From NCBI GenBank assembly GCA_964270895.1, contig OZ185440.1: DNA of 64,000 nucleotides; one strand, 5' to 3'. Below the pieces are notes generated by a model. That model searched no databases, was not told the DNA's origin, and saw only the letters and a program-made list of their open reading frames with translations. The translations under genes were made by a program, and so were the position numbers. Origin of the DNA: Podarcis filfolensis. Lineage: Eukaryota. Numbering within the stretch: position 1 is the first letter of the stretch; each line of letters begins with the position of its first letter. Below, piece after piece: positions 33,282 to 54,353 of this stretch.

Positions 33282-33365
33282 AAAAGGTAAAGGACTCCTG
33301 ACAGTTGAGTCCAGTCGCGAACAACTCTGGGGTTGTGGAGCTCATCTCACTTTACTGGCCAAGGG
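33282..33365 (-). mobile_element. Short Sauria-type SINE 3' fragment
   Basis: 7-bp TSD AACCTTA; AAAGGTAAAGG tail. Confidence 0.75.
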
Positions 33366-33975: not shown

Positions 33976-34112
33976 CAGGCTTCCTCAAATTCAGCCCTCC
34001 GGATGTTTTTGAGACTACAATTCCCATCATCCCTGACCACTGGTCCTGCTAGATAGGGATCATGGGAGTTGTAGGACAAAAACATCTGGAGGGCTGAGTT
34101 TGAGGAAGTCTG
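33976..34112. mobile_element. 137-bp palindromic hAT MITE (ACTACAATTCCCA family)
   Basis: Perfect 8-bp TSD CTCTAGCT; CAGGCTTCCTCAAA termini; long imperfect inverted arms. Confidence 0.88.
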
Positions 34113-34632
34113 CTCTAGCTGAAGAAGCCTTTTTCTTTTGTATTTTTCCCTTCCCACCCCCACGTGCCTCTCAAAAGAATTTTTGCCCATCTTAATTTCT
34201 TCTCCCATTTTCCAACCTGTGTCTTGCACTGGCACAAGGAGGTCAAGGGAGCTGTAGCCCTATCCCGCAATGTTCCACAGCAGCTGGCGTTTAGAGGAAT
34301 CCCGCCAGTGATCCTGGATGTACCATATAGCCATCATGACTAGTAGCCATCAAGAAAAAAATAAAACAATGGGGAAACAATGGGGCTGTGTGTGGAAGAG
34401 AAATATGGTTTTTCTAATGCTTGACACGTGGTTCATTTAAAGGGCTGGAGAAGAGCTCCACCACTTTAATCAGAGCTGTCTCCAGGATTTGGGGGGTGGG
34501 GGCTCTTGGTTCTGGTACCCTCAACAGAGCACTCCCTAACTTGAAAAGGTGGAACATGCTGAGAATTCTTTTAAGCTGTGCCTGATCTTTCTGAATACTC
34601 TGTGTGCAGTGAAATGGTAGCACTGTTAAGAC

Positions 34633-34883
34633 CATGGGTAGGCAAACTTAAGGCCCAGGGGCCAGATGTGGCCCAATCGCCTTCTAAATCTGGCCCGCGG
34701 ATGGTCCTGGAATCAGCATTTTTACATGAGTAGAATGTGTCCTTTTATTTTAAATGCATCTCTGGGTTATTTGTGGGGGCACAGGAATTCGTTCATTTTT
34801 TTCCTTCAAAATATAGTCCGGCCCCCCACAAGGTCTGAGGGATGATGGACCGGCCCCCGGCTGAAAAAGTTTGCTGACCCCTG
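34633..34883. mobile_element. 251-bp non-autonomous hAT (Charlie/OC1-like) element
   Basis: Perfect 8-bp TSD GTTAAGAC; termini CATGGGTAGGCAAACT / AGTTTGCTGACCCCTG; repeated GGCCC subterminal motifs. Confidence 0.85.
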
Positions 34884-35449
34884 GTTAAGACACTACAAGT
34901 GGTTTGTAGTGAGGTTTACAGTGAGGAAAGGGCTTCTTTCAGTAGAATAAATGAGTCCTAAAAGGTACACAAAACAGTACATGCATGGAAAGGGAGAGGA
35001 GTAGAGCCACTTGTCACCAGTGGCACTTATCTCCCATGGCACTTAGAACTGTAGTTCGAAAGGACCCCAAAGGGTAATCTAGTCCAACCCCCTGCAATGC
35101 AGGAATCTCAACTAAAGCTTGACTGATTATAGTCCACCATACAGCTCTCTCAAAAAATAAATGTCATTTGGGAAGGAAAATCGAATTTTTCCAACAAAAA
35201 TACTTTGTGGCTTGAAGAAGATTTCTTTGCAACACAATCACTACCTTAAACTAAGCCTAGGGCTGAGCGCTGAGGTGGTCAAGCTTCCTGTCCGCACCAA
35301 ATAATTCAGGGTGGTAAAAACAAGAAAGGAATTATGAGCCGCTCCAGCGGCATCTTCACCAAATCAGGTGAATGGGCATTAAAATGTGAAATGGCAAATG
35401 CCTCTTCAATAATTTCTCCTTTAATACCACTTCCCACCATATGATGTGA

Positions 35450-36320
35450 ACTAATTGAAAATAAAATCACAAGAGCAAATTTCTGGTGTGATGTCCGCTG
35501 TGCGATTCTTGCCGTTTGCGCTCTACCAAGACACAGGAACTCGATCTGTGGTTTTCGCCACGTGGCCAGCAGAGGGAGCTGTTCACCCATGACTTCGCTT
35601 CCTTTCGAGGCATACAGTACTTTTTTTTGGTCGCACCTGCAAAGGTGGATATATAAATAGAAGGAAGGGCAGATGCTTCGCCGGGATATCTGCGCATGCC
35701 GAAGAATCCGGGGCATGCGCACTAGCAAGCACCGTGGGGGCTTTGCTTTCCTTATCCGGGATTTGGAAGCGACCTTGGCGGGGCCCCGGAACCTGGATAA
35801 TAAAAACGACGAGCAGGTTGGGGAAGCGGGATAAAGCTTCGTCATACAGGTTGCAGGGCAGGTGGCTGCGGGCGAGGCCTGGTGCATGGCGGTCAGGCGG
35901 TGGACTCGGCCCTCCACAGGTCGGTGCCGGCAGGGAGGCGGGGATGAGATGGGGAGATGCTCCTGTGGGGGGTGGATTTCCATCTCCTCCGCCGAGACGC
36001 TGCACCCTGGGAGAGAAAGAGGGGGCGCCCTCGGGTCCCCTCCACCAGCAGAGCCCCCATTGCCCCCTCCTACGTCCCAGAGCCCTCCTTTTTTGCACGA
36101 CTTACCCCTCAGATTCCTGCCCAAGAGGTAGGAGCTCTGTTTTCTTTTTTCCCCTTCCCGGACGCCTTGCAACAGCTGCTTGGCAGGCAGAAATTCGAGT
36201 GGAGATCTCCCCGGCTGTGTGGGGAAGCTGTACCTGTTGGGTTTCTGCCTGCCTAAATCAGAGGAGCTCTTTCTCCATGGAGGGGACTATAGATGGCGTT
36301 CGGGACCCCTTTCCAACTCT
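35450..36320 (+). promoter_or_regulatory. ZNF76: CpG-island promoter / non-coding first exon region of ZNF76
   Basis: Local CpG and GC enrichment; E-box CCACGTGG 35558-35565; CTCF-like TGGCCAGCAGAGGGAGCTG 35563-35581; TATA-like ATATAAATAG near 35650; inverted NRF1-like pair 35691-35700 / 35712-35721. Exon 1 boundaries cannot be fixed from sequence. Confidence 0.75.
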
Positions 36321-37662
36321 ACCATTCTGTGGGGAAAGGTGGCTGGCTCCCTTTTCTGGGAGGGCTCTTGCGTGCAAGCAGAGATGAAGTGACCTGATCA
36401 TCTCCCATCAAGCGTGCTGCGTGCTGGTAAAATGTAGGGCCAGCAAAAGAAAAGAGAAAAGTGACCACAGATGTTTTTCTGTAGAATATCTCCCAGCTCC
36501 TTTCCCGATTGGTAAAATCTCTCCCAGTTCAGCATCCCTCACCTACATGGAGCCCCAGTTATATCTCCTCAATCCAAATGCTAACACTTCATCCGTGATT
36601 TAGGTTTGGTTGCTGAACCCTCATCTGTAACCCTCGGTCTGTTAATGTGCAATACCATTTGTACCACAAGACCCCTGCTAGTAAAATTTTAGAGAATACA
36701 TTGGTCAACAGAATTCACCAAATCAGTTCTGTCATTTCCCTCTTTCCTAAAGCTTTTCACAAAAAAGTAAAGCTTCCTTTCAAGTTCTGTTGATCTTATT
36801 CTATGTTTAAGCAAAGAATATGGAATGATGCCCTTCAGGAGGCTACTTAGCAAATGCCAGTTATTTTCCTGGCAACAGGAAAGGGGAAAGGAACACAAAT
36901 GTATAGAAAGCACACAAAAAAGTTTCTGTAGCTCCATGGCAGATCATGCGGAATATCCCAGGTTCAATCAATATATGGCATCACCATATAGGCCTGGGGA
37001 AGACCTTAGCCCCTGAAACCCATGGAGATCCACTGCCAGTCAATTTAGAAATCCAGAGCGAGATGGTCAGACTCTTTAAAGCAGCTTTTTGTGTCCCAAA
37101 TTATGGAACAGTAACAGAAAGGAGACTACCTTCAATGCTAGCCCGAGTTTCTTCCAGTTGTATGATGAAGGTTTCACCACAGGAGGTGTGGGGGTAGTTG
37201 AAATGGCTTAATTGACCAGATTCATTTTGCAGACTGCCAGTTCATCACTCCAGACTGAAGTTGGTGCTATACAGTTATTGTCTTTCATGGGTCTAAGGGT
37301 GTAGTTGTGCCAGTTTATGGACCAAGAGATTTTGACAAGTCAGTAAAGCTGCAGTCTCATGTTTACAACATTGGCCAGCCCGATATCTTTGGGGAAAACC
37401 ACAAGTAGGACATGAAGCCAACAGTACTCCCCTGTTATTTGACCCGTATCAGAGGTAGGCTGTCTCTGAACATGGAGAATTGTCATGACGAAGAGCCTTT
37501 GGTAGACTTACATTCTAATCCTGTCCAAAGAATTCTACTCGGATTACTTTTTATATAAATGTGAAGAAATTTATATATAACTTGCTGTTTATGTTATAGT
37601 TCTAACATGGAGAACCATCTTATATGTGCAATACATGTCTAAGGAGCCACCACCAGAGCACA

Positions 37663-37735
37663 ATGGAGAGCTTTGGCTTACAGGCAACGACCCTTTCTGA
37701 TGGAACAACAGCCTATGTTCAGCAAAATGCTAATG
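37663..37735 (+). CDS. ZNF76: ZNF76 first coding exon
   Basis: acaATGG start in strong context; MESFGLQATTLSDGTTAYVQQNAN; G|gtgagt donor; 73 nt; resembles human MESLGLHTVTLSDGTTAYVQQ. Confidence 0.9.
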
Positions 37736-38421
37736 GTGAGTAACTTTGGTGCTGTAGTGGTTGCCTTCTTGTGGCTGGTGAGATTGGGACTGATCCAACC
37801 ATATGATTAATGTTCAAAGCACTACACATGCAAGAAGATCTTTGGACATATACACTAGGTTAAAATATTTTATTGGACAAAATTATAGTGGACAAATTGT
37901 TCATGTTTTTTAATTTAAATAAATTAAAGATAAAAACAGAGTAGAGTTTAATGTGGTTTTAATGGTGAGCTTTTAGAAAGAAGAATGTGATCTGTGAGTC
38001 CTGATTGACCGCGGTATGTGTTTGAATAACCAATATGGTACAGATGCAACTAATATGGTACAGAAGCAATGTGACATCTAACTGCCGCACTGAATTGGAT
38101 GGATATATGCTACAGAAGCAAGAGTGGAGTAAAAATGTTCAATTTTAAGGATGTCTCAGCTGGAATGTGGTTTCTGACTAAGTGATTATAAAGTGTTTCC
38201 CAAGGAATCTCTATTTAACCAAATGAGGGAAAGAAGAACTCTCATTTCTTTTTTAAATGATGTGCATAATTGATTGCAAAAGGCTATTGGCAGAAGAGTT
38301 CTGATTTTGATTTTTTTAAAGTAATGTTTGGGTTTCTCTATATTTACTGACATGCCAATTCTTGTACCCAAATATCTTATAATGTAGGTATATATTGGCT
38401 ATGGTTACAGTTTTATATATA

Positions 38422-39676
38422 CAGTGGTGCCCCGCAAGACGAATGCCTCGCTAAACGAAAAACCCGCAAGACGAAAGGGTTTTCCGATTTTTTAGCGGCT
38501 TCGCAAGACGAATTTCCCTATGGGCTTGCTTCGCAAGACGAAAGCCCACAGGGAAATCTCCGGGGACAGCGGGGAAGCGCAGCGCGCCTTCTCCTCTGTT
38601 CCCGGACCTGTCCTGAAGGCTTGCGGTGGGAGGTCCGGGAACAGAGGAGAAGGCGCGCAGCGCTTCTCCTCTGTTCCCGGGGCTTGCGGTGGGAGGAGGG
38701 TTTTTCCTCCCCACCGCCAACATTCAGAACAGCATTCTGAATGTTGGTGGTGGGGAGGAAAGCCCTCCTCCCACCGCAAGCCTTCAGGACAGGTCCGGGA
38801 ACAGAGGAGAAGGCGCGCAGCGCTTCTCCTCTGTTCTCGGACCTGTCCTGAAGACTTGCGGTGGGAGGAAGGTTTTCCTCCCCACCGCCAACATTCAGAA
38901 GGCTGTTCTGAAGGCTGGCGGTGGGGAAAAAAGCCCTTCTCCCGCCGCCAGCCTTCAGAAGAGTTCCCTGCAGGGCTCTCCAAGCTGCGGATAGCAGCCT
39001 GCTGCCCCGCGCGAGGGGCGCTCTGCTTCAGAGCGCCCCTCGCGCGGGGCAGCAGGCTGCTATCCGCAGCTTGGAGAGCCCTGCGGGGAACTCCTGCAAA
39101 GCTCCCCAAGCTGCGAATGTCTGCCCCGCGCGAGGGGCGCTCTGGGCAGCAGGCTGCTATCCGCGCGGGGCAGCAGGCTGCTATCCGCAGCTTGGAGAGC
39201 CCTGCAGGGAACTCCTGCAGGGCTCCCGAAGCTGCGAATGTCTGCCCCGCGCGAGGGGCGCTCTGAAGCAGAGCGCCCCTCACGTGGGGCAGCAGGCTGC
39301 TATCCGCAGCTTGGAGAGCCCTGCAGGGAACTCCTGCAGGGCTCCCGAAGCTGCGAATGTCTGCCCCGCGCGAGGGGCGCTCTGAAGCAGAGCGCCCCTC
39401 GCGCGGGGCAGCAGGCTGCTATCCGCAGCCTAGGCAGCCCTGGGGGAACTCTTCTGAAGGCTGGCGGCGGGAGAAGGGCTTTTCTTCCCACCGCCAGCCT
39501 TCAGAAGAGGTCCGGGGACAGACTGTCCCCGGACCTGGTCTGAAGGCGGTCTCCATAGGAACGCATTAATTGATTTTCAATGCATTCCTATGGGAAACCG
39601 TGCTTCGCAAGACGAAAAACTCGCAAGAAGAAAAAACTTGCAGAACGAATTAATTTCGTCTTGCGAGCCACCACTG
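38422..39676. mobile_element. 1,255-bp non-autonomous Tc1/mariner (Tigger/pogo-like) element with foldback, CpG-rich interior
   Basis: TA on both sides; TIRs CAGTGGTGCCCCGCAAGACGAA / CAGTGGTGGCTCGCAAGACGAA; repeated CGCAAGACGAA subterminal motifs; nested palindromes and about 119-bp tandem units; no transposase ORF. Confidence 0.88.
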
Positions 39677-39953
39677 TACATACCTGGGCATAAGTCTCAT
39701 ATAACTCATTAAGACTGATTTTCAGACCATATACTTAGATTGCACTGTGAGGCTGCAGTTCAATTCATGTTGCTTTTGAAATTACCTTGCTTCTGAATAA
39801 ACATGCAAAGACTGAGCTTCCGAAAAGCACTTTGCTTTGTAATTATTTTCCTTGATAAGAGATTGTCAGGTGAGCCTGGGTGAACATGTTGAATCTTGTT
39901 AACCTGGAGGGCTTTTTCAATGCTGTAACAAATTTTCTTGTCATCTGCTTCAG

Positions 39954-40034
39954 GAGAGAAATTAATTGAAGGGCAAGTGATTGAACTTGAAGATGGATCC
40001 ACAGCTTTTGTCCAACAAGTAACATTGCAGAAAG
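39954..40034 (+). CDS. ZNF76: ZNF76 coding exon 2 (LEDG activation repeat)
   Basis: ttcag|GAGAG...AAAG|gttagg; 81 nt; GEKLIEGQVIELEDGSTAFVQQVTLQK. Confidence 0.92.
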
Positions 40035-41198
40035 GTTAGGAGTAATAGATGTATACCTATTTCAGAAATTTGGGGAGCTTTCACTGCTTTTTTCTGTTTG
40101 CAATTTTCTCTGTGAGTGAACCTCTTGTGATATTTGCACTAAGCCGTAGTGCACTTCTCACAGTTAGAGATGCGTATTTCAGGTAGAAACTGTAAATCAG
40201 CAGGAGGCACACACTTATGTAGAGCAGATAAAATGTGCTGGATTTCAACAGGGCTGCTAATGAGTAAATTTGCCTAAGGGCATCTGTTTTGGACCTACTT
40301 GGTACTAATCTTCCACAAGAATAATATCTTGTGTGTAAGCTGCTGTAGCATTGCAGTGCAATCCTGTTCATGGTTACTTAGAACTGAGATTCATTGAGTT
40401 CAGTGGGCTAACTCCCATTTTGGTGTGCCTAGAGTTGCAATCCTATTCATACTGTCATGGGGGTGCATACCATTGTTTCCATGAGAAAACATGCGTAGAA
40501 TTCAGCTGTTAGTTTGATCAAATATACATCACAACTTAAATACTCCGAATTTCTTATCTGAGACCCATGTTACACATCATGAGGTAGACAGGTTGTACAT
40601 TTCAGCTTGTAGAAATCTGGACTGTACTAATTCTGGTTGGAAGCTGTGTGTCGTTTTCCTTTAATGCCCAGAAGGCAGGAGGCTTCTGAATGCCAGTTGC
40701 TGGAAACTGAAGGAGCGAGTGGTCTTGTGCTCACATCCTGCTTGTAGGCTTCCCATAGACACCTGGTTGGCCACTGTGATAACATAATGCTGGATTAGAT
40801 GAGCCATTGACCTGATCCGACAATCTATTTTTACACCTTCATGTAAAAACCAGATACTTTGCATGTAGTCGTGTTGTAGAGAAGGGAGAATGGTTCCTCT
40901 CCCTGGTGTCATCATTCATCACACGGAAGAAGCTTTGCAGTGGGAGGAGCACTGAATACTAGCTGTGATAATAGGCCTTTTTATGCAATTTGACTTTTTT
41001 CCCCATTCGTGTCATTGAACTGACATGGACAGGCTTCTTTTCAAGGATTATAGAGCAAGGGCCCTGTAGGCCTTTGAGCAAACCATGGCTAGAATTCTTG
41101 AGTTGTTCTTGTAAAGCCAGCTTTGTTTACTTTCTGTTGCATAACAACCTTACAATGCATGGAGTTTATTTTTGTGTATGTTCTGATTTGTTCTGTAG

Positions 41199-41276
41199 AG
41201 TCCATCACATTTGAAGATGGTCAGCCAGTAGCGTTGGAAGACGGCACTATGGCTTTTATACATCATGCTCCCCAAG
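41199..41276 (+). CDS. ZNF76: ZNF76 coding exon 3 (LEDG repeat)
   Basis: tgtag|AGTCC...CAAG|gtaacg; 78 nt; ESITFEDGQPVALEDGTMAFIHHAPQ. Confidence 0.93.
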
Positions 41277-42445
41277 GTAACGATCAGTCTTTGTACCTTC
41301 CTTTCCACATACTAGGTAAAATAATTCGTACACAGTGGGTAGTATTCAATGATAACGAGTCGCTTGATTAAAGGTAATAAATATTACTAACTTCAGCTAA
41401 TTCATTTCAGTGCATCAACTCTGAGTATAACTTAGTTGAATGCAACCCAGTAGTCTAATAAATGTGATCACAGCTGTGTGTGTAGCTATTGGGCTGGACT
41501 CAACTAAATTGTTGCACTAGCAGGAGCCAGTGCAACAAGTCCCACTAGCACAATGGAGCTTCATCCTCCCCATATGCCTCCCAGTTGGCTCTGGGGGTTT
41601 GGGAAAACTTCAGAACAATGCATGGGGGGAGGAGATGGGAGCTCATGCTGTCTGGGAAGCAGAAATGCTTGTGCTGACAGAGCGATCATAATACTGCAAC
41701 ACTGAATTCCTCCCATAGTCTTTTTAAAGTCAAGTCATAAAACAGTTCAGGTTAGTGATGAAGAGAGAAAGCTCTGGGGAATCAGATGTGCAGACAGATG
41801 GTGTGGCTCTTTGCATCACTGCCAAACCTTGAGTTGGAGAACAGAAAGAGTCAGCAAGCTTAAGAACTCTGTCCTCCCCTCTCTCAGGATCAATCCTGAT
41901 TTGGAGAGATAATTGAAGACTACCCTTGACTGGTTTGGATATCATGGTAAATGGTGGTTTAAGGAAACTAGGTAACTTTCTCTTAAGAGTTGGAAGGGCA
42001 AGTGCTTGAGCATATCACTCACTCTTGATGCTTCACAGTATGGTTTGGTAACAGGGAATGTGTTCTGTTTCAGTATCTTATCAAATCCTTTCCCTGTAAC
42101 CATACAAAATCGTCCTATCCAGATTGACAAATTACTACCATGCAAGTAGATTGTTCCTTATTGCTCTGCAAACAGTTCAAGGATGTGTGGAAATCATTCT
42201 GTGGTGATTGTATAATGATTCCACGCAGCTTTTGACTGTGGAATGTGTTTCATGTTGCAATTTTCAGCCATAAATAGAGTTGGATTCTGTTGGTGTTTGC
42301 AATGATTGAATTTTGAACTGCCGTGAAGATTTTGCCATTGATGCTTTTAACTCTTCATCTTTTTGCCAGCTCTAAATGATCAAGAGGTAGATAAGTAGCA
42401 ATTAGAGCTGACATGTGCTACTACAGTGTTTGTGGTCCCCTCCAG

Positions 42446-42942: not shown

Positions 42943-43059
42943 GGCTTCCACGAGGAGGAAGTGGAGAGCAATGGGAAGGAACCAAAGGTTCCTGATAGAG
43001 TTTACCGCTGTGGTTACAGTGGTTGTAGCCGCCTCTTTACCACATCTCATCATTTGAAG
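42943..43059 (+). CDS. ZNF76: ZNF76 coding exon 5, zinc finger 1 start
   Basis: ggcag|GGCTTC...GAAG|gtaagt; 117 nt; GFHEEEVESNGKEPKVPDRVYRCGYSGCSRLFTTSHHLK. Confidence 0.92.
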
Positions 43060-43415
43060 GTAAGTCATCGTCGTAAGCTCACAATGTTGCCTTTTAGAGG
43101 ACTAAAAGCTCTGCTGTACCTATAATGGGAAACCATTGATGCTGTGGAAGAGACAGTAATTCACCAGTGCAAGCTTAAAAAAAAATTCTTTTGGAATAGT
43201 TTTTAAGAGGCTGGATCTGATGCAGTGATGTCGGAGAGAGCCTGGGTACAAACCTCTTCTCAGCCTCTATATTTTAAATTTTAATCTGTTTTAGTATTTT
43301 CACTTTTTGTACGTTTTAAGGTAATGCTGTATTTTTTTCCTGTTTTTCTTGTTTCACCTTTTTGTAAACAGCTTAGGTTTTTTTCAGTCAAGTCGAGCCT
43401 TCTCTGTCTTCACAG

Positions 43416-43491
43416 GTGCATGAGCGGGTTCATACAGGTGATCGTCCATACAGATGTGACTTCTCAAGCTGTGGGAAAACCTTTACTACAG
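43416..43491 (+). CDS. ZNF76: ZNF76 coding exon 6, ZF1 end / ZF2 start
   Basis: cacag|GTGCAT...ACAG|gtaatg; 76 nt; [25 protein letters not shown]. Confidence 0.94.
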
Positions 43492-43669
43492 GTAATGTGT
43501 GTCAAGAACAAAAGATGATCTTGTTCAAGTGGAGTTATGCAGGTCTGAGAAGGAAGATCGAAATGTAGCAAGCTGAGGACTATTGAGCCTAAATGGATAA
43601 CGAAATTGAACTAAGTACAAGGTATAGTTCCTGGTGACTCAAGCTACTTAGCTTACACGAAACTTCTAA

Positions 43670-44029
<360 letters not shown>

Positions 44030-44570
44030 TAATTCCATAATTTTAATCTAGAATAAATTGTGCAGACTTATGTAAGTGTATTTCTATGTATAATGTTTAG
44101 TGTGGGATTTGCAGGCACCATTTATCAGCTCATTTCCCATGCTCAGCACTTTCCAAGGTAACAGCTGATTGGCATACACTTTTCTTTTTTTGCCCACATG
44201 GTTTGATTTCAAACTGTGTGGGCGAAAATAGGTCACCGAATGTCATGTGACCTGAAGTGACTGATACCCACCTGCCAAACCTGTCCCTCGGGTGTGTGTG
44301 GATCCAGCTCCCCACCCCCGATCTAGAATGAGGCACTGTTCAGGTTGTAGCTGCCTAAGGAAAAATGATGGAGGGCCTTTCAAGCTGTCATGCTCATACT
44401 AGCTTCACATATGGCAGTTGGCTCTTTGACACTATAATGAAGATGGAAGACCTCTGCCCAGCCTGGCAAGGTAGCATTTTCACAATTACAGGCAAGAGGG
44501 GCAAGAGTGTCTTAAAATGTCAGTGCTATCACAGGCTTGCTAAGGATGCCTTCTCTCTCTTCCCCTGAAG

Positions 44571-44750
44571 GTGAGAGGCCTTTCAGGTGCCCTTTTGAGG
44601 GCTGTGGCCGCTCATTCACCACCTCAAATATACGGAAGGTCCACATCCGGACACACACTGGTGAGCGACCATATATGTGCCCAGAGCACAACTGTGGGAG
44701 AGGGTTCACTAGTGCCACCAACTTCAAAAACCACATGAGAATCCATACAG
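44571..44750 (+). CDS. ZNF76: ZNF76 coding exon 8, ZF4-ZF5
   Basis: tgaag|GTGAG...ACAG|gtaata; 180 nt; [60 protein letters not shown]. Confidence 0.96.
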
Positions 44751-44756
44751 GTAATA

Positions 44757-44778
44757 TGTGTGTGTGTGTGTGTGTGTG
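44757..44778. repeat. (TG)11 microsatellite 6 nt into the intron after ZNF76 coding exon 8
   Basis: Direct reading: CAG|gtaata(tg)11. Confidence 0.95.
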
Positions 44779-45111
44779 TCTTAATTTTCATATTTCATTA
44801 ACGGGAAACACCATACAGGCAATCCTCAGCATGGTATACTTTCACAATCTGTGGGGGTGGTGTCACTTGGTTGAACTTTATTATGTGTAACACACCATCC
44901 CAGTGACACATTACTGCATTGGGGGGATCAACATGGAAACTATAGTGTGCTTGCTTGCTTGACCCAGTTGTCATCTGTAAGATGGCCAGTTAAAAGAAAA
45001 TGTGTATTGAACTACTAAAAACAAGTAGAGTGAGATTTGAAGCCCCCTTCCCAATTGCTTAAAGTACTCTTGCAGTGTAATCCTATACCTTTTTGAAAGT
45101 AAACCCCACTA

Positions 45112-45337
45112 CAGTGGTATCTCGGGTTACATACGCTTCAGGTTACAGACTCCGCTAACCCAGAAATAGTGCTTCAGGTTAAGAACTTTGCTTCAGGATA
45201 AGAACAGAAATCGTGGTCCGGCGGCGCGGCGGCAGCAGGAGGCCCCATTAGCTAAAGTGGTGCTTCAGGTTAAGAACAGTTTCAGGTTAAGAACAGACCT
45301 CAGGAACGAATTAAGTACTTAACCCGAGGTACCACTG
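45112..45337. mobile_element. 226-bp Tigger-like MITE, copy 2 (ZNF76 intron)
   Basis: TA on both sides; CAGTGGTA...TACCACTG termini; same length as 32923-33148. Confidence 0.9.
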
Positions 45338-45451
45338 TATATTCAATGGGGCTTATTACCTAGCAAGTGTGTTTTGGGATTTCAGCCTTTGCTTTGTGCC
45401 ACAAAGTGAGAGGTACCCATTCCTTTATATTTCCTTCTTCTTATTTCCCAG

Positions 45452-45682
45452 GGGAGAAGCCATATGCATGCCTGGTGCCAGGCTGTGGGAAGCGCTTCAC
45501 TGAATATTCTAGCCTTTACAAACACCACGTGGTTCACACACACTGCAAGCCATACACCTGCAACACCTGCAGCAAAACTTACCGCCAGACCTCTACGTTG
45601 GCTATGCACAAGCGCACTGCGCATGGAGAGCTGGAAGCTACAGAAGAGAGTGAACAGGCCCTCTATGAGCAGCAGATGAGAA
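45452..45682 (+). CDS. ZNF76: ZNF76 coding exon 9, ZF6-ZF7
   Basis: cccag|GGGAG...AGAA|gtgagt; 231 nt; [77 protein letters not shown]. Confidence 0.96.
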
Positions 45683-45789
45683 GTGAGTAGGCACTAGAGT
45701 TTTGTGGGAAGCTTCATACCTTGAGCCTATATATTCTTGTCGTTTCCTGGCTCATTGCCATGCTTCCTTGTGCTTCCTAGTCCTTAAAT

Positions 45790-45925
45790 CAGGCTTCCTC
45801 AACCTCGGCCCTCCACATGTTTTGAGACTACAATTCCCATCATCCCTCACCACTGGTCCTGCTAGCTAGGGATCATGGGAGTTGTAGGCCAAAAACATCT
45901 GGAGGGCCAAGGTTGAGGAAGCCTG
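45790..45925. mobile_element. 136-bp palindromic hAT MITE (same family), ZNF76 intron
   Basis: Perfect 8-bp TSD CCTTAAAT; CAGGCTTCCTCAACCT...AGGTTGAGGAAGCCTG. Confidence 0.9.
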
Positions 45926-46046
45926 CCTTAAATGCTCCCGTCTGCTGTTCCTGCCTTACCTTCAGATAACTTTTTCAAAGCTGTTTCAATGCACTCTGCT
46001 GCTCAAGTAGAGCACTCTGCTGAATCTCCTTTCCTTGTTCTCTCAG

Positions 46047-46174
46047 TTGCCACGTTTGATATACCTTCACTGAAACACCAGTGTATTGTTTCTGTGAAGG
46101 TGGAACACGAGGAGGAGCAGGAGGATTGCAGGGCTGTGCCAGTGACTCTCGTATCTCAGGATGGAGCAGAGCAG
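46047..46174 (+). CDS. ZNF76: ZNF76 coding exon 10, acidic region with SUMO consensus
   Basis: ctcag|TTGCC...GCAG|gtatgg; 128 nt, phase 1 to 0; IATFDIPSLKHQCIVSVKVEHEEEQEDCRAVPVTLVSQDGAEQ. Confidence 0.85.
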
Positions 46175-46423
46175 GTATGGAGTCTGCAGAACTTGAAACT
46201 AAATCCACAGAGGTAACAACTCTCTGGTTTTGTTACCTAGGACAGGTCAGATAATCTTTACCCTGAAAATGCCCTAATCCTAAACATTGGCTATAGTACA
46301 TCTGCATGCAACATCTACTTAAATCATGTTAGCTCCATCCTTGGTACTTAGTTGGACAAGGGTTCTAATCACACCAGTTTGGGTGAATGAACATTGCAGA
46401 GCAGGGTTTTATTTATCTGTTTA

Positions 46424-46566
46424 ATAATAATAATAATAATTTATTATTTGTACCCCGCCCATCTGGCTGGGTTTCCCCAGCCACTCTGGGCGGCTTCCAA
46501 CAAAGATAAAAAATACACTAAAATGTCACATATTAAAAAACTTCCCTGAACAGGGCTGCCTTCAGG
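46424..46566 (-). mobile_element. LINE (L2-like) 3' end with (ATT)n tail
   Basis: (AAT)n run followed by TACCCCGCCCATCTGGCTGGGTTTCCCCAGCCACTCTGGGCGGC, a young lacertid LINE terminus as recalled. Confidence 0.65.
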
Positions 46567-46966
46567 GCTGTTTGTTTCATAAAATGCATACACCATACAC
46601 TTGATTGTAAAATAAACCCCTCAAAATGGTGAATATCACAGAGCCTGGGATAGCCCCACATTGGACAAAAGATTCCTGCATTGCAAGGGGTTGACTAGAT
46701 ACCCCTCATGGTCCCTTTCAGCATTACAATTCTATTACTCTATTACCATATCTTCCTATTAGTGGTGATGTAATCCAATTTTTCACCATTTGCTTATGCA
46801 AGGAACGTTATGATTTCAGGTGAAGAACATGCCTGTGTGAATGAGCTTTTTCTCACTTTACTACTTCTATTCCCCATGCTCCCAGCCCATGAATCAGCTT
46901 GAATCTTTTCTTTTTAATCTGTAGCCTTCAATTTGGCCTGACTCCATTTTCACCTGCTCTTTGCAG

Positions 46967-47122
46967 GTCCGTCTGTCTCCTGAAGACTTGCAAGTACTTG
47001 GCTGTGATATCACCATGCTAACACAGAATGGCACAGCAGTATCAGTGCCCCAGGAAGATATTTCAGCAAGTGGTACAAATGTGCTGACTATGATTGGCGC
47101 CGATGGGACTGAAATACATCCG
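46967..47122 (+). CDS. ZNF76: ZNF76 coding exon 11
   Basis: tgcag|GTCCGT...CCG|gtactc (weak donor); 156 nt; VRLSPEDLQVLGCDITMLTQNGTAVSVPQEDISASGTNVLTMIGADGTEIHP. Confidence 0.87.
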
Positions 47123-47210
47123 GTACTCATTTCTTCTAAAACCTTTGACATAGTCTGGGAAAGTGTTTTTTTTTTAATTGTAATGGTTGTGCTGATGTGA
47201 TACTTTTCAG

Positions 47211-47324
47211 GTTACAATAGTCACTTCTGAGACAAAGGCATCCGAGGATTTGCCCACCGCATCCATCCACCACCAGCAGCTGACAGTACTAGCAACAGCA
47301 AAGGACACTTATATTGCAGTTCAG
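47211..47324 (+). CDS. ZNF76: ZNF76 coding exon 12
   Basis: ttcag|GTTACA...TCAG|gtattt; 114 nt; VTIVTSETKASEDLPTASIHHQQLTVLATAKDTYIAVQ. Confidence 0.88.
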
Positions 47325-48425
47325 GTATTTCATATACACATCTTGCTTAGAGTTTGCAGGCACAGGTGTTTTTGTCATGTTGGAAGAGAGCCTCTTGTCC
47401 CCTTCCCCAAGGATGCATATAGGTGATGAGTCTGACCTCATACTGCCTTACCACTATGCAGCAGAAGCCACATTTTTAGGGCATTGATTGACACAGAGAC
47501 CAGCCAATCATGAAACTAACTCCTCCTCCTTGGCAGCCCTTGTTTCAGTCACACAGAGCAGGTTTTTAAGTGTAAAAATAATAGAGCACCAAACAAATAT
47601 TTGAGCAGAGAACAATGCAGGCTCTTGAAAAGCTAATCAAACGGGACAGCCAGTCTGAAGCATCAGGTGAAGGAGCAACTCTTAAAATTCAGTTTGAAAC
47701 CAGGTACTTGTGTTCTCTGAGGAGTGAAGTGGGAGAACACACTTTTTTTTTTAACTTGGTAACTTCCATCTGGGTTTCAGACTTCTTTGTTCCCCATCAA
47801 TTACGATAAGGAGAAATTGCCTTTGTTGTGAATTTTTGTGGAATGTTTAGGGATTTCAAAGACCACAAAAAGTACTGTACTCTTTTCATCTTGTGATTTT
47901 AGGATTTACAAAGAACACATTAATTGTCATACAGAGCAATAATACTGTATTGGTCTGAATATAGGTTACACTTTCCCCCAAAATCTGGCTTGTATAAAAC
48001 CTGAGTGCAGCCCATAATCACACTTTTACAGGTAAGGAAGCTATGACTTCAGAGATCTCATTTTAGGGCTGTGATCTCTTTCAGGGGCAGCTTATATTCA
48101 GACCAGTACCATAAGTAGCTGTCCCTTGTAAGAAGTCAATCCATTGAGTTAAATGGGGTTTCCGCCCAGGTAACTCTGTATAGCAGCGGTAGGGACCCTC
48201 TGGCCCTGCACCAGGCTTGGCCCACCAGGGGGTCCAATTTGGCCTGTGATTTCCCCCCAAATCATTCCTATCAGCTTATGTCATTGGTAACATCATCTGA
48301 TGGATGGAAGGACAGGCTTTAATTCTTCATTGGCTGAGCACCCAATTTCCAGCAGGGAACAGGATTGTGCAGCAGGATTGCTTATCATTTGAAAGGCATT
48401 AAAATCATTTGCTTTTTACTTTAAG

Positions 48426-48582
48426 CAGTGGCGTAGCGTGGGGGGTGCAGGGGGGGCCGGGCGCACCGGGCGCAACATCTGGGGTTAGGGCAAATCCACG
48501 GGTTAGGGGGCGCAAATCCACGGGTTGGGGGCGCAAATTACTTGCCTTGCCCCGGGTGCTGACAACCCACGCTACGCCACTG
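48426..48582. mobile_element. 157-bp GC-rich hAT MITE
   Basis: Perfect 8-bp TSD ACTTTAAG; 17-bp perfect TIR CAGTGGCGTAGCGTGGG; internal 22-nt tandem repeat. Confidence 0.9.
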
Positions 48583-49136
48583 ACTTTAAGTGAGCTGGGG
48601 AGGGGGCATCTTAAAACTGCAAAGTACTATTCAAAGCAGCTCCCCAAAAGCACATTTTAAACATGACTTTTAATAGAAAAGGGTGAGGCTGCTTCAAAGA
48701 CAGGTTTTGCAAAGGCTTTAAGATAGCCCCCTGTGGTCTTGCTTGAGCTTCTAGGGGCATCAGGGGTTTGAAGGGGGAGCGTGGGGAGACTTGCAAAGTT
48801 ACAAAAGGGATTTTGATAGGTGGAGGCCTCTACCCTCTCCCAGTTGTGATGCCATAACGAGGAGTGGGTAAAATTTGGCCAGTGAGGTGGATCCTGATCA
48901 GGCTGTGACCTGCAGAGCCAAAAAAGATTCCTCACCCCGATGTATGGGATAGATGAAGTCAAAGACTATATTGTATGTTCACAGCTGCCTGATTTCCTTT
49001 TGTGCCCTTTTTACATTTCTACCTATTTTCTTTTCCCACCATGCAATCACTTCATTTCCACATAACTTCCTATGCTGTTTCTTCACTTCCCCGTTGAGCT
49101 ACTTCTGCTTCTGCATATCTACTTCCAAATAATGTG

Positions 49137-49380
49137 CAGTGGTACCTCAAGTTACAAATGCCTCAGGTTACAAACGCTTCAGGTTACAAACTCCGCTAAC
49201 CTGGAAGTGTTACCTCGAGTTGAGAACTTTGCCCCAGGATGAGAACGGAAATCGTGCACTGGCAGTGCAGCAGCAGCAGCAAGAGGCCCTATTAGCGAAA
49301 GCACACCTCTAGTTAAGAACAGTTTCAGGTTAAGAACAGACCTCCGGAGCAAATTAAGTTTGTAACTAGAGGTACCATTG
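49137..49380. mobile_element. 244-bp Tigger-like MITE, related subfamily
   Basis: CAGTGGTACCTC...GAGGTACCATTG termini; right TA flank, left TG; internal CAGGTTA repeats shared with the 226-bp family. Confidence 0.82.
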
Positions 49381-50125
49381 TATGTTTATAGTGCCTTAAA
49401 ATAATTTGTGTGTGAAAGAAAGCCAGCAGTGGTTAACTTTGCATCCAATGTTTACTTTGAAAAGTTATGTGTCTTTAATATTATCTTTCTCTCTGCCAAT
49501 TTGCACTTAGATGCTTGCTTTGTCTTGGGAGCCAGTTCGTAGGCCAGAGTTTAGCAAGTGGGCAGTCCATAACCAAATCCATCTCCTTGGATAATGCTGG
49601 TTGGGTCTTCAGTTGCCAGAGACAAAGGGTGTCTAAAAGTGGAGTTAATGATGTCTGTGACAATATGGAGCAGCATCCAGTGAACTTGTTCCACTGGTGC
49701 ACCATAACCAACCAGTCTGCAGGCAGGGCTGTTTGTGAATGCGTCCTTAGTGCTAATCTCATATTACTATTATCACTTTTCATCCATGTACCTGACCATC
49801 ACTTGTGTGTCTCCCAACCAAATACATATTTTTCTGCCATTTGTGTTCATTTATTTCACTTGGAAACACCAGGCAACTCCATGCTGTCATTAGGCAGCTT
49901 CAGGCAATTGATTTGGGGTGTCATGAAATGTTAGCAGATTATTGATTATTCTGATTTTTTATTATATATTTTTACTGCCAGGGAGGAAAAGAAGTGCTTG
50001 TGAGATTTTCTGCCTCAGGCCTCAAAATTATTTGACCTTAGGTATTAGTCACCATGACTTGGAGCAGTGGGTGGTGGAGATGGGACCACAAACTTGAGAG
50101 TGATGCAGTCTTTTTCTCTTTCCAG

Positions 50126-50230
50126 GTAAAAGAGCAGCAGAGCTCAGATGATGCCATTAGTGTGTCAACCTCAGCAATTCAACAGGATTCTGCAACTCTT
50201 AAGGTATCCACATCAAACAGTGGGTGCTGA
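50126..50230 (+). CDS. ZNF76: ZNF76 terminal coding exon with stop; total CDS 1668 nt = 555 aa
   Basis: tccag|GTAAAA...TGCTGA; VKEQQSSDDAISVSTSAIQQDSATLKVSTSNSGC*; ends in SGC like human ZNF76; all 13 exons join in frame. Confidence 0.88.
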   Translation, partial: VKEQQSSDDAISVSTSAIQQDSATLKVSTSNSGC

Positions 50231-51007
50231 GACCTCACATGGAGCTGGAGCAACTGAAGCTGGATGGATCACTGGAGTCTTCAGAACCTCCAACTCAAAA
50301 GCCAAGTGATGGGTGCTTATCCTCCTGGACCTGAAGAGAGCCCTTACTATTTGCTGCCATCTGTCCGGCATGAATGAGCTGATAACTGAGAAGCACAGAT
50401 GGTGAAGTTACATGAACTATTGGATGCGACTTGGTTTAGAAATATTCCTCCTATAAGTGCTACAACATGTTTTATGGCCTCTTTAAGAAAGCCTTCCCTT
50501 AACTTTCTGAGGTGGCATCCGCACTATCATTCTGGACCTTTCTAATTTCTGCTGAATGTTATTGGAGGAAGCACTTGTATTTCATTTCTTGGAGGGCTAG
50601 AACAGCCTTCATAAGATTATGGGACTTGCATGGCTGGGGAGAGTTATCTCTTCAAAGTTTTTAGCATTAAATGTGTTTTTAGCCATAGAAAGTTCAGGAA
50701 AAGGAATTACGGGTAGATGGGTGCTCTCTACTTTTCCTTACCTCAGATACATGGGAGCAGAAAGTGTTGGCACAGGAGCGGTCACACACTTTCTGAGAAG
50801 AACTGAAATGCACAGTACTGGGGAAGGACAAATATTAATGTGATGGCTGTGCTGTATGCATTTCCTCCCAATTATCGTGGTTTCTTCCCAGTCTCAGCAA
50901 GTGAAATAGACTGAAGCAGACGTGCAAAGGAGAAGAAACAGCTTTGTATTACATTTTATTTGCCTCTTTCACTCTCTGAAATAACAGAAGACGCTAAATG
51001 TGTATTT

Positions 51008-51013
51008 AATAAA
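51008..51013 (+). terminator. ZNF76: Candidate polyadenylation signal of ZNF76 (3' UTR about 0.8 kb)
   Basis: AATAAA followed by U/GU-rich TTTTGGACTTGATGTTTTCG. Confidence 0.6.
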
Positions 51014-51868
51014 ATTTTGGACTTGATGTTTTCGATTTTCTCAGCAGTTGCCTGGACTTCCTTATTAAGGAATTGAGACGTGAAGCAGAATGTGCCTACA
51101 TCCCTGGTCATACTTCACTACAATAAGCTGTAGAAATGTGTGATCAAGTTAAGCAGCCAACAGAGATCCCTACCGATGTTACCATACAGGGTTTTAATCC
51201 TGTTGGGTCCTCCTGAATGAGTGACAAGTCAAACAGCATTTCATTCTGTGAGGCTGATCTATTGTTTGAACTGCCTGTGGTTGTGTAGGGGATACTGAGT
51301 TCCTCCATCTAAATTGGCGTTCTGTTGTAGCATCAGGGAGAAAGTCATCTGTATCACAACAGCCTTAGCCATGACATGTGAACATTGCTCTGAATGGGCA
51401 ATATGGTGCTTCTTTGTTTTTTATATGTTCATTTTGCAGATAGCTCATGCAATTGTATTCTTTTACTCATTTTACTGAGCTGTGTTGGTATGAATATAAG
51501 AGACACACCCAGCTCAAATAGTACTGCACTGTTCTGTTGCAGTTACAACATGTGCAGTGCTGTCTTTTCAAGCCTCCCTAGACCATAACTGTTTGTTCTT
51601 AGAGCACTGCCAGGTGTTCAGGCCTCTTTTTTATCTTTGTATGTTCTTCTGGCATTTAAGTTCTCAGACTAAAATTCAGACCAGGTTCATAAACCTGGAA
51701 CACAAGTTGACCAAAGAGCAAGCAATATTCTGTACTCCAATATTGACACATCCTTTAGATAAAAAACTTTTTAGACTATTAAGCCCATCAATTTTGGGGG
51801 TTCAACTCCCTCAAATATTTTATTGTGGTGTGTGTGAAGGGACCTTAGCCCCTAGGAGTTGGCACTTA

Positions 51869-52046
51869 AGCTACATACTATATACCATGAAAGCACATTC
51901 TTTCCCTCAAAGAATCCTGGGCACTAGTTTAAGTTAGACTGCTGGGAATTGTAATTCCTCAAGGGTGAACTACAGTGCCTAGAATTCTTTGAGGGAAATA
52001 GTTCTTTGAATGTGCTTTAAGGGTATATATATTGTGTAACATAGCC
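51869..52046. mobile_element. Palindromic MITE, probably PIF/Harbinger-type, between ZNF76 and DEF6
   Basis: TTA/TGA 3-bp flanks; arms AAAGCACATTC/GAATGTGCTTT and TTTCCCTCAAAGAAT/ATTCTTTGAGGGAAA. Confidence 0.55.
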
Positions 52047-52379
52047 TGAGTTTAACTTTCCCTTCAGGAAATTAAGAGCTGGAGCATCCTCATCTGATGG
52101 CCTCTGCTTGGAGACCTCTTCCTGCATATTGTAAACTGCCTTGAGTACGCTGAGGGGCAGGCAAGATTAAAACAATTTTTTACAACAAAATTTTGCCAAG
52201 TAGAAAGAGGCCCAGTTCCCCCAACAGGTGGCATTAACCGTGAGAATAATACATTTATGTAGCCCCATGAAATGAGTAACCGGGCAGGAGATTGCAGCCT
52301 TGAGGAAAGAGAACGGGTAGAAAACGAGCGACATGCCAAATCTGAATGTTGTTGGACTCGAATACAAATTGGACTCTCG

Positions 52380-52960
52380 CTAGTGTTTAAAGACGGGCGA
52401 ACTTCCTGTCTTAAAAAAAAAAAGATTTGTATTCATTGTTCTTTGCTCAAATACACTGAACCACGAAAAGGGGGAAGGAAAAAGTGCGAGGTGGCGGCGC
52501 GCAAGCTCCCCGAGCGTCGAGGCGACAGGAGGCGCTGCGGCGCAAAAGCGGCGCGTTTCCTGAGCGGCCCGAGGGAGGATCCTCCTCGCCGAGCCAGCAG
52601 ACTCTGTCCGCGGGGCGCTCGAGCCATGGAGTTGCGAGCCGAGCTTCTAAAGTCCATCTGGTACGCCTTCACCGCCTTGGACGCGGAGAAAAGCGGCAAA
52701 GTGTCCAAATCTCAGCTGAAAGTAAGTGGAAGCGGGTTGAGGGAGAGAGAAAAGGCGGCGGAGGCGGCTGCCTGCTCCCTCAGAGCCCGCGGCGGGCTTA
52801 GGGCGCGCGCTTCGCCTGTCCCCAGCAGGGCTGCCGGCGCTTTGGGAGCCACAGGGCAACTTCGGGAGCGAAAAGAAAAGAAACTCCCCTCACAGCTGTG
52901 GTGGCGACTTAGGGTTGTGGGGTTGCTGTGGATTGCGACTTAGGCGGGGGATATCTAAGG
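52380..52960 (+). promoter_or_regulatory. DEF6: CpG-island promoter of DEF6
   Basis: CpG/GC-rich segment spanning the start codon; ETS-type ACTTCCTGT at 52401-52409. Confidence 0.75.
52626..52721 (+). CDS. DEF6: DEF6 (SLAT/IBP, SWAP-70-like) first coding exon; the rest of the gene lies beyond the window
   Basis: GCCATGG start; [32 protein letters not shown]; AAA|gtaagt donor; 96 nt; KSIWYAF is DEF6-type (SWAP70 has KAIWHAF); synteny with ZNF76. Confidence 0.93.
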
Positions 52961-54217
52961 AGTCGTGTTCTTCTCTTTATTAAATAAAGGGAAGGAATAA
53001 ACATTATGTACTTAAATGTTCTGGTCTTTTAGATGTGCCTTCCCCCTTTCTCTGCATTGGGGTGTGTAAGCATGTGCGTGTTAGAAATAGACATTTGCCT
53101 TCTTCCTGTTGAATTTCCTCTGCCCTTTTCCGAGGCAGCTGGTTGCAAATGCAGCGTTCCTACCCACGCTCTCTACCGGTCTCATAGCTGGCTGCTTTTA
53201 AAATGGGGCAAAGGTTGTGCAGAATGTGGGCTCTGCCCCCCCCCCTTTACAAAAAGCGTTTCTTTCTCTCTCTTCTCCTTCGCAGTAATCTTGTTGGGTG
53301 GGCATGACAGATCTTCTGCTGAGTAGACAAGACTCGCTTTCTTTAAAGGGGCAAAATGAAGAAGAGCAAAACTCTCCTTCCTTGTAAAATCCTTGTAAAC
53401 TTTGAAATAGCAACAAAGGCGGTGCTCTGAATTACAATGTGGACGCTGGGCTTTTGCTTAATCACAGTTTTCGAAGCGGGCGAGATGGCAGATGAGATGC
53501 AAATGCATGCAAGCCCAGCCAAAGTAGGGCAGAAAAGATCTGAGGAACGCTTGATGCAAATAGTGGCGACACCTTGTGTGGATCCTATTCAACTCGGTAC
53601 ATAACACCTTGTGAAATGAGCACAAGCCGATGAGCGTAAGTGATAAAGGTTAAGGCTGGCTTCCTGCACTGCTCTTACATAAAGTGGCGGCTGAACCAGT
53701 GGGGAAACTGTTTTGCCCCCTCTGGACCACCATCCTTAGCCCTTGAGCAGTGCCAAATGAATGCAAATGCTGGGCAGCTGCCCGGCATCCCCAACTGTTT
53801 GCAGAGAACTCCCACGTTGCTGTTGCTGCTGCTCTGTTTTTTTAAAGCCTTAGATTTAACTCTGCAGCTGTACATGACTTTTGAGAAAGTATTTGCTTGT
53901 TTGATTTTTTAAAAAGCAAAAGCGTCTAGTATGAAAAGGAGCACTGATGAGGGCCTCTCTCTGTTTATTTGCACACGCTGGCCTTGCAAGGCGGGAAGGG
54001 TAAAGAGCAAAACAAACAGCAGCATTGAGCCATTGCAAGAATTACATCACTGCCATTTCTTCATGGAATCTTGCTGAGAGCAAAAAGGGGTTGTGTGTTT
54101 GTGTTTACAACTTCCACTCCTTGGTTTAAACGCTGCAAAAGCACAGTATATTTATAAGCAAAAGCATTTTTTGTGGTTACTTTTTACGCATCATAATTAC
54201 ATTGCTACAGTTTATGA

Positions 54218-54353
54218 CAGGCATGGCCAAACTTGGCCCTCCAGATGTTTTGGGGCTACAATTCCCACCATCCCTGACCACTGGTCCTGTTAGCTAGGGA
54301 TGATGGGAGTTGTAGTCCCAAAACATCTGGAGGGCCAAGGTTGGCCATGCCTG
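54218..54353. mobile_element. 136-bp palindromic hAT MITE (same superfamily), DEF6 intron 1
   Basis: Perfect 8-bp TSD GTTTATGA; CAGGCATGGCCAA...TTGGCCATGCCTG. Confidence 0.9.

Follow-up and report, generated by a model that had tools for sequence, protein, structure and literature searches.

Abundant hAT-like MITEs with ACTACA and Staf-site-like motifs lie, probably by chance, beside and inside a presumed lizard ZNF76 gene

Introduction

Why do several copies of one short mobile element, each with motifs that resemble the binding sites of ZNF143, ZNF76 and THAP11, lie beside and inside a gene that we take to be ZNF76 itself? The question arises in a stretch of 64,000 nucleotides from the lizard Podarcis filfolensis (contig OZ185440.1 of assembly GCA_964270895.1), which is referred to here as the window. 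A first-pass annotation of this DNA had noticed the elements, and we followed up its claims by computation.

Sites of the ACTACA plus Staf type that are borne by transposable elements are already known. Mammalian MLT1J has the same composite motif and is bound by ZNF143, THAP11 and ICN1 (PMC3627581); mouse B2 SINEs also contain matches to the ZNF143 motif, and these are unoccupied (PMC11687419). The M4 motif ACTAYRNNNCCCR of housekeeping promoters contains ACTAYR, which is required for THAP11/HCF-1, and a GCG-to-TAC change is used for inactivating Staf sites (PMC5006282). The sequence ACTACAATTCCCA on its own is bound by the DBD of THAP11 and not by the ZNF143 DNA-binding domain (PMC3627581).

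Results and Discussion

Intact and decayed copies of the MITE

Three intact copies lie on the plus strand of the window, at 33976..34112 (copy 1, 137 bp), 45790..45925 (copy 2, 136 bp) and 54218..54353 (copy 3, 136 bp), exactly where the first-pass annotation had placed them. All three are flanked by perfect 8-bp TSDs, which are CTCTAGCT for copy 1 (33968-33975 and 34113-34120), CCTTAAAT for copy 2 and GTTTATGA for copy 3. Their termini read CAGGC...GCCTG, with CAGAC in one arm, and the arms of 58-64 nt are 86-93% complementary. The subfamily of copy 3 is set apart by other termini (CAGGCATGGCCAA...). The elements are well below the size limit of about 600 bp for MITEs and are non-coding, have terminal inverted repeats and TSDs, and occur in many copies of near-uniform length, which is the build of a MITE. 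Stop codons occur in most frames of the intact copies, and a protein search with the single frame that is open across copy 1 found no relative. ORFs of at least 180 aa occur in the 64-kb window only over CpG-rich regions, and no transposase ORF was found within it.

Members of the hAT superfamily have short termini of the YARNG or CAG... type, and the autonomous elements encode a transposase with BED, RNase-H-like and hAT dimerisation domains. The termini of the lizard MITE agree with the YARNG pattern at four of five positions. The earlier description of the family as hAT-like is supported by the 8-bp TSDs, and the superfamily call uses TSD length and termini only.

Decayed relatives had been listed near 16762, 23818 and 57556. 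They lie at 16763..16893 (minus strand; an old full-length copy with the degenerate TSD CCCTAGAC / CTCTAAAC), 23828..23932 (plus strand; both arms still discernible) and 57569..57679 (minus strand; copy-3-type subfamily, with ACTACAGCTCCCA kept). A decayed partial copy at 60183..60262 (plus strand) had escaped the first-pass annotation, and there is a marginal half-copy at 56686..56736 (minus strand; nhmmer E ~0.1). Altogether, at least 7-8 family members were counted in the 64 kb, at least four of them decayed.

Motifs in the MITE arms

Motifs were scored against published IUPAC consensus sequences, with analytic and shuffle controls. Of the two arms of every intact copy, one contains the M4/THAP11 motif exactly and the other has one mismatch to it; a further exact match lies in a decayed copy (57645-57657). 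The composite motif in the left arm of copy 1 (34014..34038, plus strand) contains an exact M4/THAP11-type 13-mer and has two mismatches over the 25 positions of the ACTACAN+SBS consensus. The same holds for the right arm of copy 3 (54292..54316, minus strand), while the left arm of copy 2 (45827..45851, plus strand), with one mismatch in 25, is the best match in the window. The right-arm motif of copy 1 (CCTACAACTCCCATGAT..., 34051..34075, minus strand) deviates from ACTACA at one position and fits the SBS less well. The 21-mers that had been quoted from the three copies were found at 34014-34034 (+), 45827-45847 (+) and 54296-54316 (-). The 13-mer of copies 1 and 2 is identical to a published EMSA probe (TBS, PMC3627581) that was shifted by human THAP11. 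Exact TBS matches (ACTACANNTCCCA) number five in the 64-kb window versus 0.01 expected, and four of the five are inside members of the MITE family.

Within the 64 kb only MITE arms come within two mismatches of the 25-nt ACTACA+SBS consensus. The analytic chance of such a match is about 2 × 10^-6 per arm; the proposed likeness to the composite consensus is real and far above chance. When compared with the Staf-site consensus YWCCCRNMATSCMYYRCR, the arms agree at 16-17 of 18 positions, a score that ~3 unrelated sequences also reach in 64 kb. None of the disagreements is in the core CCCRNMATSCMY, which TCCCATCATCCCT fits with no mismatch, as had been claimed. All mismatches to the SBS consensus fall in the 3' YYRCR tail, and the 3' GCG triplet of the Staf site is absent from every MITE arm, with ACC or GCT in its place.

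Each copy does contain two inverted motifs, as the first-pass annotation had observed; this is an automatic result of its palindromic build, which also turns the motifs towards one another, with 12 nt between them. The differences between the left and right arms (AATT vs AACT) are identical across copies 1-3 and were therefore inherited from master copies.

Gene context

Seven C2H2 finger exons lie on the plus strand at about 42960-45680, and a DEF6-like first exon lies at about 52630-52730. The names ZNF76 and DEF6 are our assignments from exon translations, gene order and paralogue features; the finger gene is presumably ZNF76, as it adjoins the DEF6-like first exon without a WEE1-like gene between. 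When the last finger exon was used as a protein query, the matches were generic C2H2 clusters only, so that ZNF76 and ZNF143 are not separable by database match. Likewise, the 60 matches listed by a PDB search for a ZNF143-DNA structure were all generic C2H2 proteins.

Copy 1 lies 1.4 kb upstream of a CpG island at 35500-36000 (GC 0.59, CpG o/e 0.84). Copy 2 lies in sense orientation in an intron, about 108 nt past the last zinc-finger exon, and copy 3 in intron 1 of the DEF6-like gene, ~1.5 kb downstream of the first exon. The exon positions bear out the placement given earlier, that is, upstream of the island, in the post-finger intron and in DEF6 intron 1.

That MITE copies lie next to and within ZNF76 is probably a matter of chance. 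The probability that at least two of three copies fall in the ZNF76 gene plus 2 kb upstream is about 0.17, and neither an M4 nor a Staf site was found in the ZNF76 or DEF6 CpG islands. In human cells ZNF76 transcription is unchanged by ZNF76 or ZNF143 (PMC3936768). These results agree with the remark in the first-pass annotation that the proximity to ZNF76 may be coincidence. Autoregulation of ZNF76, as the main reading, is rejected because the islands lack the sites and the human gene is reported not to be autoregulated (PMC3936768). Nothing special is indicated for ZNF76 itself.

Age, abundance and the shared core

The three copies had been called young. This description holds only with reservations, in view of mutual identities of 81-90% (90.5% between copies 1 and 2, 86% between copies 2 and 3, 81% between copies 1 and 3) and of the presence of copy 1 in four related taxa. 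There it lies at the orthologous site, with flank contigs entering from both sides, and no empty-site joint was found among the joints listed for these taxa. Any fixed insertion would be shared in this way.

The summed word depth of the MITE core bin was 0.8-1.8 × 10^5 times that of single-copy flanks in four runs, a depth that is not a copy number. Extrapolation from the density in the window gives about 0.7-1.8 × 10^5 copies. As a rough figure, the family has about 1 × 10^5 copies, and the suggestion that motifs had been dispersed in large numbers holds: the family is huge, and therefore on the order of 1 × 10^5 such motifs are scattered. Exact-pattern scans of metagenome and viral collections gave no match to further copies.

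The motif-bearing core is common to MITE subfamilies with different termini. The core bin exceeds the left-terminal bin 17-fold in depth, and loose ends reveal other termini attached to the same core. Copies 2 and 3, with 19 differences overall, differ by ~26% in the terminal 40 nt and by ~9% in the internal 96 nt (counted by eye). Since the core is shared across subfamilies whose termini differ, it was carried along by successful master copies.

Interpretation of the motif

The copies at this locus are probably ordinary fixed insertions of a very abundant hAT-type MITE family, with most motifs neutral and unbound and with the placement at ZNF76 due to chance. The MITE would be mobilised in trans by a transposase encoded elsewhere; its insertion duplicates 8 bp. 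Each arm has, ~37 nt inside the terminus, the sequence ACTACAAYTCCCAYSATCCC. Here an M4/THAP11-type site, exact or nearly so, runs into the first two-thirds (from the 5' end) of a Staf (ZNF143/ZNF76) site that lacks its 3' GCG; spread of the family has distributed motifs of this kind on the order of 1 × 10^5 times. Single copies may have latent binding potential, strong for THAP11 and weak for ZNF143/ZNF76, Ikaros or RBPJ. Most copies are most likely neutral and unbound, to judge by the precedent in mammals and the lack of the 3' tail.

A possible but doubtful alternative is that the core was kept for the MITE's own propagation, either as a transposase site or as the site of a recruited host factor, and that its likeness to SBS2 is incidental or was exploited. 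This would fit a core that subfamilies with different termini have in common and that is far more abundant than the termini, as well as the constant AATT/AACT differences, which come from master copies. The proposed check of motif conservation points the same way in part: in seven decayed arms the ACTACA..CCCA block is 84% conserved versus 71% and 64% for its neighbours (Fisher P = 0.009), although the sample is small, and biased because the decayed copies were found by similarity to that core. Furthermore, local alignments always look better conserved mid-segment, a palindromic MITE shows any internal segment twice and inverted, and no transposase was found in the window.

It is unlikely that many copies are bound by ZNF143/ZNF76 and/or THAP11-HCF-1, with rewiring of promoters or enhancers, or titration, as the result and with copy 1 feeding back on ZNF76. 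The exact TBS 13-mer and the agreement with the SBS2 consensus at 23-24 of 25 positions argue for binding, as does the precedent of MLT1J, which is 88.9-fold enriched in ZNF143 peaks; two of the three intact copies also have a CpG island no more than 1.5 kb away. However, the TBS alone is not bound by the ZNF143 DBD (PMC3627581), no arm has the 3' GCG whose change to TAC kills Staf sites (PMC5006282), and the B2-borne motifs are unbound (PMC11687419). According to a preprint, ZNF143 sites with the upstream module and without downstream modules are bound via ZF7, with ZF1-2 dispensable (10.1101/2023.09.27.559875); if this is true, the missing 3' tail of the MITE motifs matters less. The number of sites, ~1 × 10^5 against about 1,200-1,500 conserved mammalian ZNF143 peaks, would burden the genome severely were these strong sites. 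Feedback on ZNF76 is at odds with the human gene, which is under the control of neither factor (PMC3936768); the placement of the copies is compatible with chance.

Quite improbable is the idea that the SBS2/M4-like core was retained as the MITE exploits the host THAP11/HCF-1/ZNF143(ZNF76) machinery, for example open chromatin for excision or near-promoter insertion. If it were true, wall lizards would have ~1 × 10^5 potential sites, roughly a hundred times as many as in the promoters of the host; such a load would need buffering by the genome, and single copies might occasionally be co-opted. That the long hairpin and not the motif matters, with sense intronic copies giving small RNAs or disturbing splicing, is very improbable: MITE-derived microRNAs are a precedent, the predicted folding is strong (-92 to -114 kcal/mol, z = -12 to -18) and copy 2 lies in sense 108 nt downstream of a 5' splice site, but such a hairpin is generic to every palindromic MITE and no Rfam family matched. 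A microRNA or other known RNA is rejected for now on the basis of the same Rfam search.

Binding of even a few percent of the ~1 × 10^5 copies would make this family the largest known lineage-specific site expansion for ZNF143/ZNF76, THAP11 and HCF-1, and a natural experiment in the tolerance or use of transcription-factor titration by a genome. Mouse B2 suggests that the copies are unbound, and in that case the family serves as a useful caution for motif work: the repeat would swamp motif scans of squamates, so that promoter-motif analyses must mask it.

Comparison with known elements

The lizard family resembles MLT1J (Ngondo-Mbongo et al. 2013, PMC3627581) in that a repeat consensus with ACTACA and a Staf-site motif is scattered outside promoters. 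MLT1J is an ancient MaLR LTR retroelement of human and mouse with a complete SBS2 and ChIP-shown occupancy, whereas the lizard element is a cut-and-paste MITE of far higher copy number, whose motif lacks the 3' GCG tail and is known by sequence alone. Every intact copy matches the M4/Ronin-THAP11 motif (PMC5006282) exactly in one of its arms. M4 sites lie close to promoters, are conserved and number only 520 in human promoters (PMC5006282), whereas the M4-like sites of the MITE belong to a mobile element found in intronic and intergenic DNA, with copies 1.4-1.5 kb away from CpG islands or within introns. Mouse SINE B2 (Magnitov et al. 2025, PMC11687419) is likewise an abundant repeat with ZNF143 motif matches by sequence. 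At the ZNF143-CTCF motif pairs of B2 neither protein is bound, while the lizard sites have been read from DNA only; B2 is a retroposon and the lizard element is a palindromic DNA element.

Vertebrate hAT-Charlie type MITEs are the MER1-group elements reportedly described by Smit and Riggs in 1996. The lizard family shares with them 8-bp TSDs, termini that start with CAG, the lack of coding capacity and the high copy number. The TSD of copy 1 and those of the old copy at 16763..16893 resemble the hAT-Charlie pattern nTCTAGAn, whereas the near-perfect palindrome and the SBS2-like core are specific to the lizard family.

Structure and copies of the element

Three intact copies of a hAT-like MITE are present at 33976-34112 (copy 1, 137 bp), 45790-45925 (copy 2, 136 bp) and 54218-54353 (copy 3, 136 bp). 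Direct reading of the sites shows that each copy is bordered by a perfect 8-bp duplication (CTCTAGCT, CCTTAAAT and GTTTATGA, respectively), as claimed in the first-pass annotation; the 21-mers quoted there were also found at their positions. The termini are CAGGC...GCCTG on all three copies, and an inverted-repeat scan gave an arm complementarity of 86-93% over 58-64 nt. When the window is rescanned with a profile made from these same three copies, they are returned with E ~1e-46. The profile also recovered the decayed copies proposed earlier, plus one more than had been listed; these relatives are located at 16763-16893, 23828-23932, 57569-57679 and 60183-60262, with a marginal half-copy at 56686-56736.

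The predicted hairpins of the intact elements have folding energies of -92 to -114 kcal/mol; strong hairpin folding is a trait of any palindromic MITE. A search of Rfam with the elements matched no family, and the stretch was found in no RNA run. A consistent difference separates the left from the right arm of every intact copy (left CAATT, right CAACT; 34014-34075, 45827-45888, 54255-54316), and this asymmetry is inherited from master copies. As a result the helix of a + strand RNA keeps G-U pairs, while a - strand RNA would have A-C mismatches. Short inverted repeats at 61504-61599 (40-nt arms, 93%) and 3685-3770 (34-nt arms, 88%) may represent other MITE families.

Abundance, age and subfamilies

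We aligned contigs of four runs, which carry the labels of four related organisms (A-D), to positions 33300-34800. In all four organisms flank contigs run into copy 1 from both sides; the left ones extend to 34005-34023 and the right ones start at 34087-34089. No empty-site joint at copy 1 occurs among the joints listed (46 further joints exist). In the flanks, organisms B and C diverge from the window by ~1% and organism D by ~4%; the insertion of copy 1 therefore predates those splits. The three intact copies are 81-90.5% identical in pairwise comparison. This means that they are well preserved and not very young; the first-pass annotation had called them young.

In the bin 34014-34064 the summed word depth reaches 0.8-1.8e5 times the value of the single-copy flanks, a depth ratio that does not equal a copy number. 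Scaled up to a genome of ~1.45 Gb, the 7-8 members per 64 kb give a comparable number. We take the family size to be ~1e5 copies, as an order of magnitude only; word depth and window density agree with the wide dispersal of motifs that had been proposed. Word depth is 17 times greater in the core bin than in the left-terminal one, and loose contig ends show other termini, e.g. ...GGGTCTCCAGCTGTTTTTG, joined to the same MITE core. Between copies 2 and 3, which have 19 differences in total, about one quarter of the terminal 40 nt and ~9% of the internal part differ (counted by eye on the alignment). Together, these results indicate that the core bearing ACTACA..CCCA is the module common to subfamilies.

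Two other extremely high-copy repeats (33300-33400 and 34626-34800) flank copy 1, with word depths of 1e5-1e6 times the single-copy flanks in the four runs; the contigs contain many internal rearranged joints of the second one. At 34233-34262 on the - strand, 130 nt from copy 1, there is a weak relic similar to the MITE core (CTACAGCTCCCTTGAC), which is adjoined by a moderately repeated stretch (34269-34370; depth 20-70 times the flanks).

The arms resemble a composite THAP11 and Staf site

The sequence ACTACANNTCCCA occurs five times in the window with an expectation of 0.01, and four of these five exact matches are within family members; with one mismatch there are 14 occurrences versus 1.1 expected. 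In copies 1 and 2 the left arm contains, without mismatch, the 13-mer ACTACAATTCCCA, the THAP11 probe of Ngondo-Mbongo et al. (PMC3627581), which is bound by the DNA-binding domain of THAP11 and not by that of ZNF143. Sites of this type are termed M4, and 520 such motifs are counted in human promoters (PMC5006282); the same study assigns ACTAYR to THAP11/HCF-1 and the CCCR part to Ikaros/NFKB1.

The arms also resemble the Staf site, which is shared by ZNF76 and ZNF143 (PMC3627581), as the first-pass annotation had assumed. We scored the 25-nt composite consensus, ACTACAN + YWCCCRNMATSCMYYRCR, as printed in PMC5006282. The best arm is the left one of copy 2 with a single mismatch. Two mismatches each are present in copy 1 (left arm) and copy 3 (right arm), and three in the left arm of copy 3. 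At ≤2 mismatches no match was found outside the MITE family in the 64 kb, and the analytic chance of such a match is ~2e-6 per 68-nt arm. Given many motifs and many repeat families, a genome could by chance hold a match of this kind; still, the resemblance of the arms to the composite consensus is strong and specific. The 18-nt Staf consensus alone is far less telling, because ~3 unrelated sequences per 64 kb score equally well.

Every mismatch to the composite consensus is confined to the 3' YYRCR tail, and the GCG triplet is present in no arm. A change of this 3' GCG to TAC inactivates a Staf site (PMC5006282). The composite site that had been claimed holds for its exact THAP11-type part, but the Staf part is truncated. 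A preprint (10.1101/2023.09.27.559875) reports ZNF143 sites with an upstream and without downstream modules, which are bound via finger 7 and for which fingers 1-2 are dispensable.

We also aligned 13 arms, seven of them from decayed copies, to the arm profile. In these seven arms the ACTACAAYTCCCAT block has 84% identity to the intact consensus, versus 71% and 64% in the blocks on either side (Fisher P = 0.009). This is only a hint that the motif is better conserved than the rest of the element, given the tiny sample, the detection of the decayed copies by means of the same core and the bias of local alignments towards the middle.

Judged by their sequence, the MITE arms combine an exact THAP11-type site with a truncated Staf site, spread in ~1e5 copies. 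Both the lack of the GCG tail and the very high copy number speak against most copies being strong ZNF143/ZNF76 sites. Precedents exist in both directions. The composite motif is carried by the MLT1J retroelement family, which is enriched 88.9-fold in ZNF143 peaks and also occupied by THAP11 and ICN1 (PMC3627581). The ZNF143 motif matches in SINE B2, in contrast, are unbound (Magnitov et al., PMC11687419); that study counts 1,240-1,456 conserved ZNF143 peaks for mouse and human. That the MITE-borne sites rewire or titrate ZNF143, ZNF76 or THAP11 is a reasonable hypothesis, and the main practical value is that it is cheap to test.

An isolated exact M4-type site (ACTACAGCTCCCA...) is present at 11783-11807 (+) and departs from the 25-nt composite consensus at 3 positions. 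The site belongs to no recognisable family copy or in-window repeat; a SINE-like sequence begins ~70 nt downstream.

Position relative to ZNF76 and DEF6

Exon-by-exon translation gave seven C2H2 fingers between ~42960 and ~45680 on the + strand and a further exon at ~52630-52730. Repeated activation motifs at the N terminus and a C-terminal tail (HTHCKPYTC...) presumably indicate ZNF76 and not ZNF143. We take the further exon to be DEF6-like and not SWAP70-like; the two genes are not separated by a WEE1-like gene. The names ZNF76 and DEF6 are provisional and based on single-exon translations and gene order; they were confirmed by no database hit, and an Atlas search returned only generic C2H2 clusters.

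Copy 1 is 1.4 kb from a CpG island at 35500-36000 (GC 0.59, o/e 0.84) and copy 3 is in intron 1 of the DEF6-like gene, at a depth of ~1.5 kb. Copy 2 has the sense orientation and is located ~108 nt past the last zinc-finger exon, counted from its 5' splice site; in the pre-mRNA it would be predicted to form a hairpin of -92 kcal/mol.

The association of the MITE with ZNF76 is due to chance, as the first-pass annotation had allowed. If three intact copies are placed at random in 64 kb, the probability that at least two of them hit the gene or the 2 kb upstream of it is 0.17. The density of one copy per 8-15 kb means that nearly all genes of such a size will contain a copy. The CpG islands of ZNF76 and DEF6 contain no meaningful-looking M4 or Staf-type site (within 3 and 2 mismatches). 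The autoregulation of ZNF143 mentioned in the first-pass annotation is confirmed in the literature and occurs through low-affinity sites; transcription of ZNF76 is affected by neither ZNF76 nor ZNF143 (PMC3936768).

The ZNF76 region includes a second CpG-rich block (38422-39676; GC 0.61-0.70) with dense long palindromes and tandem units.
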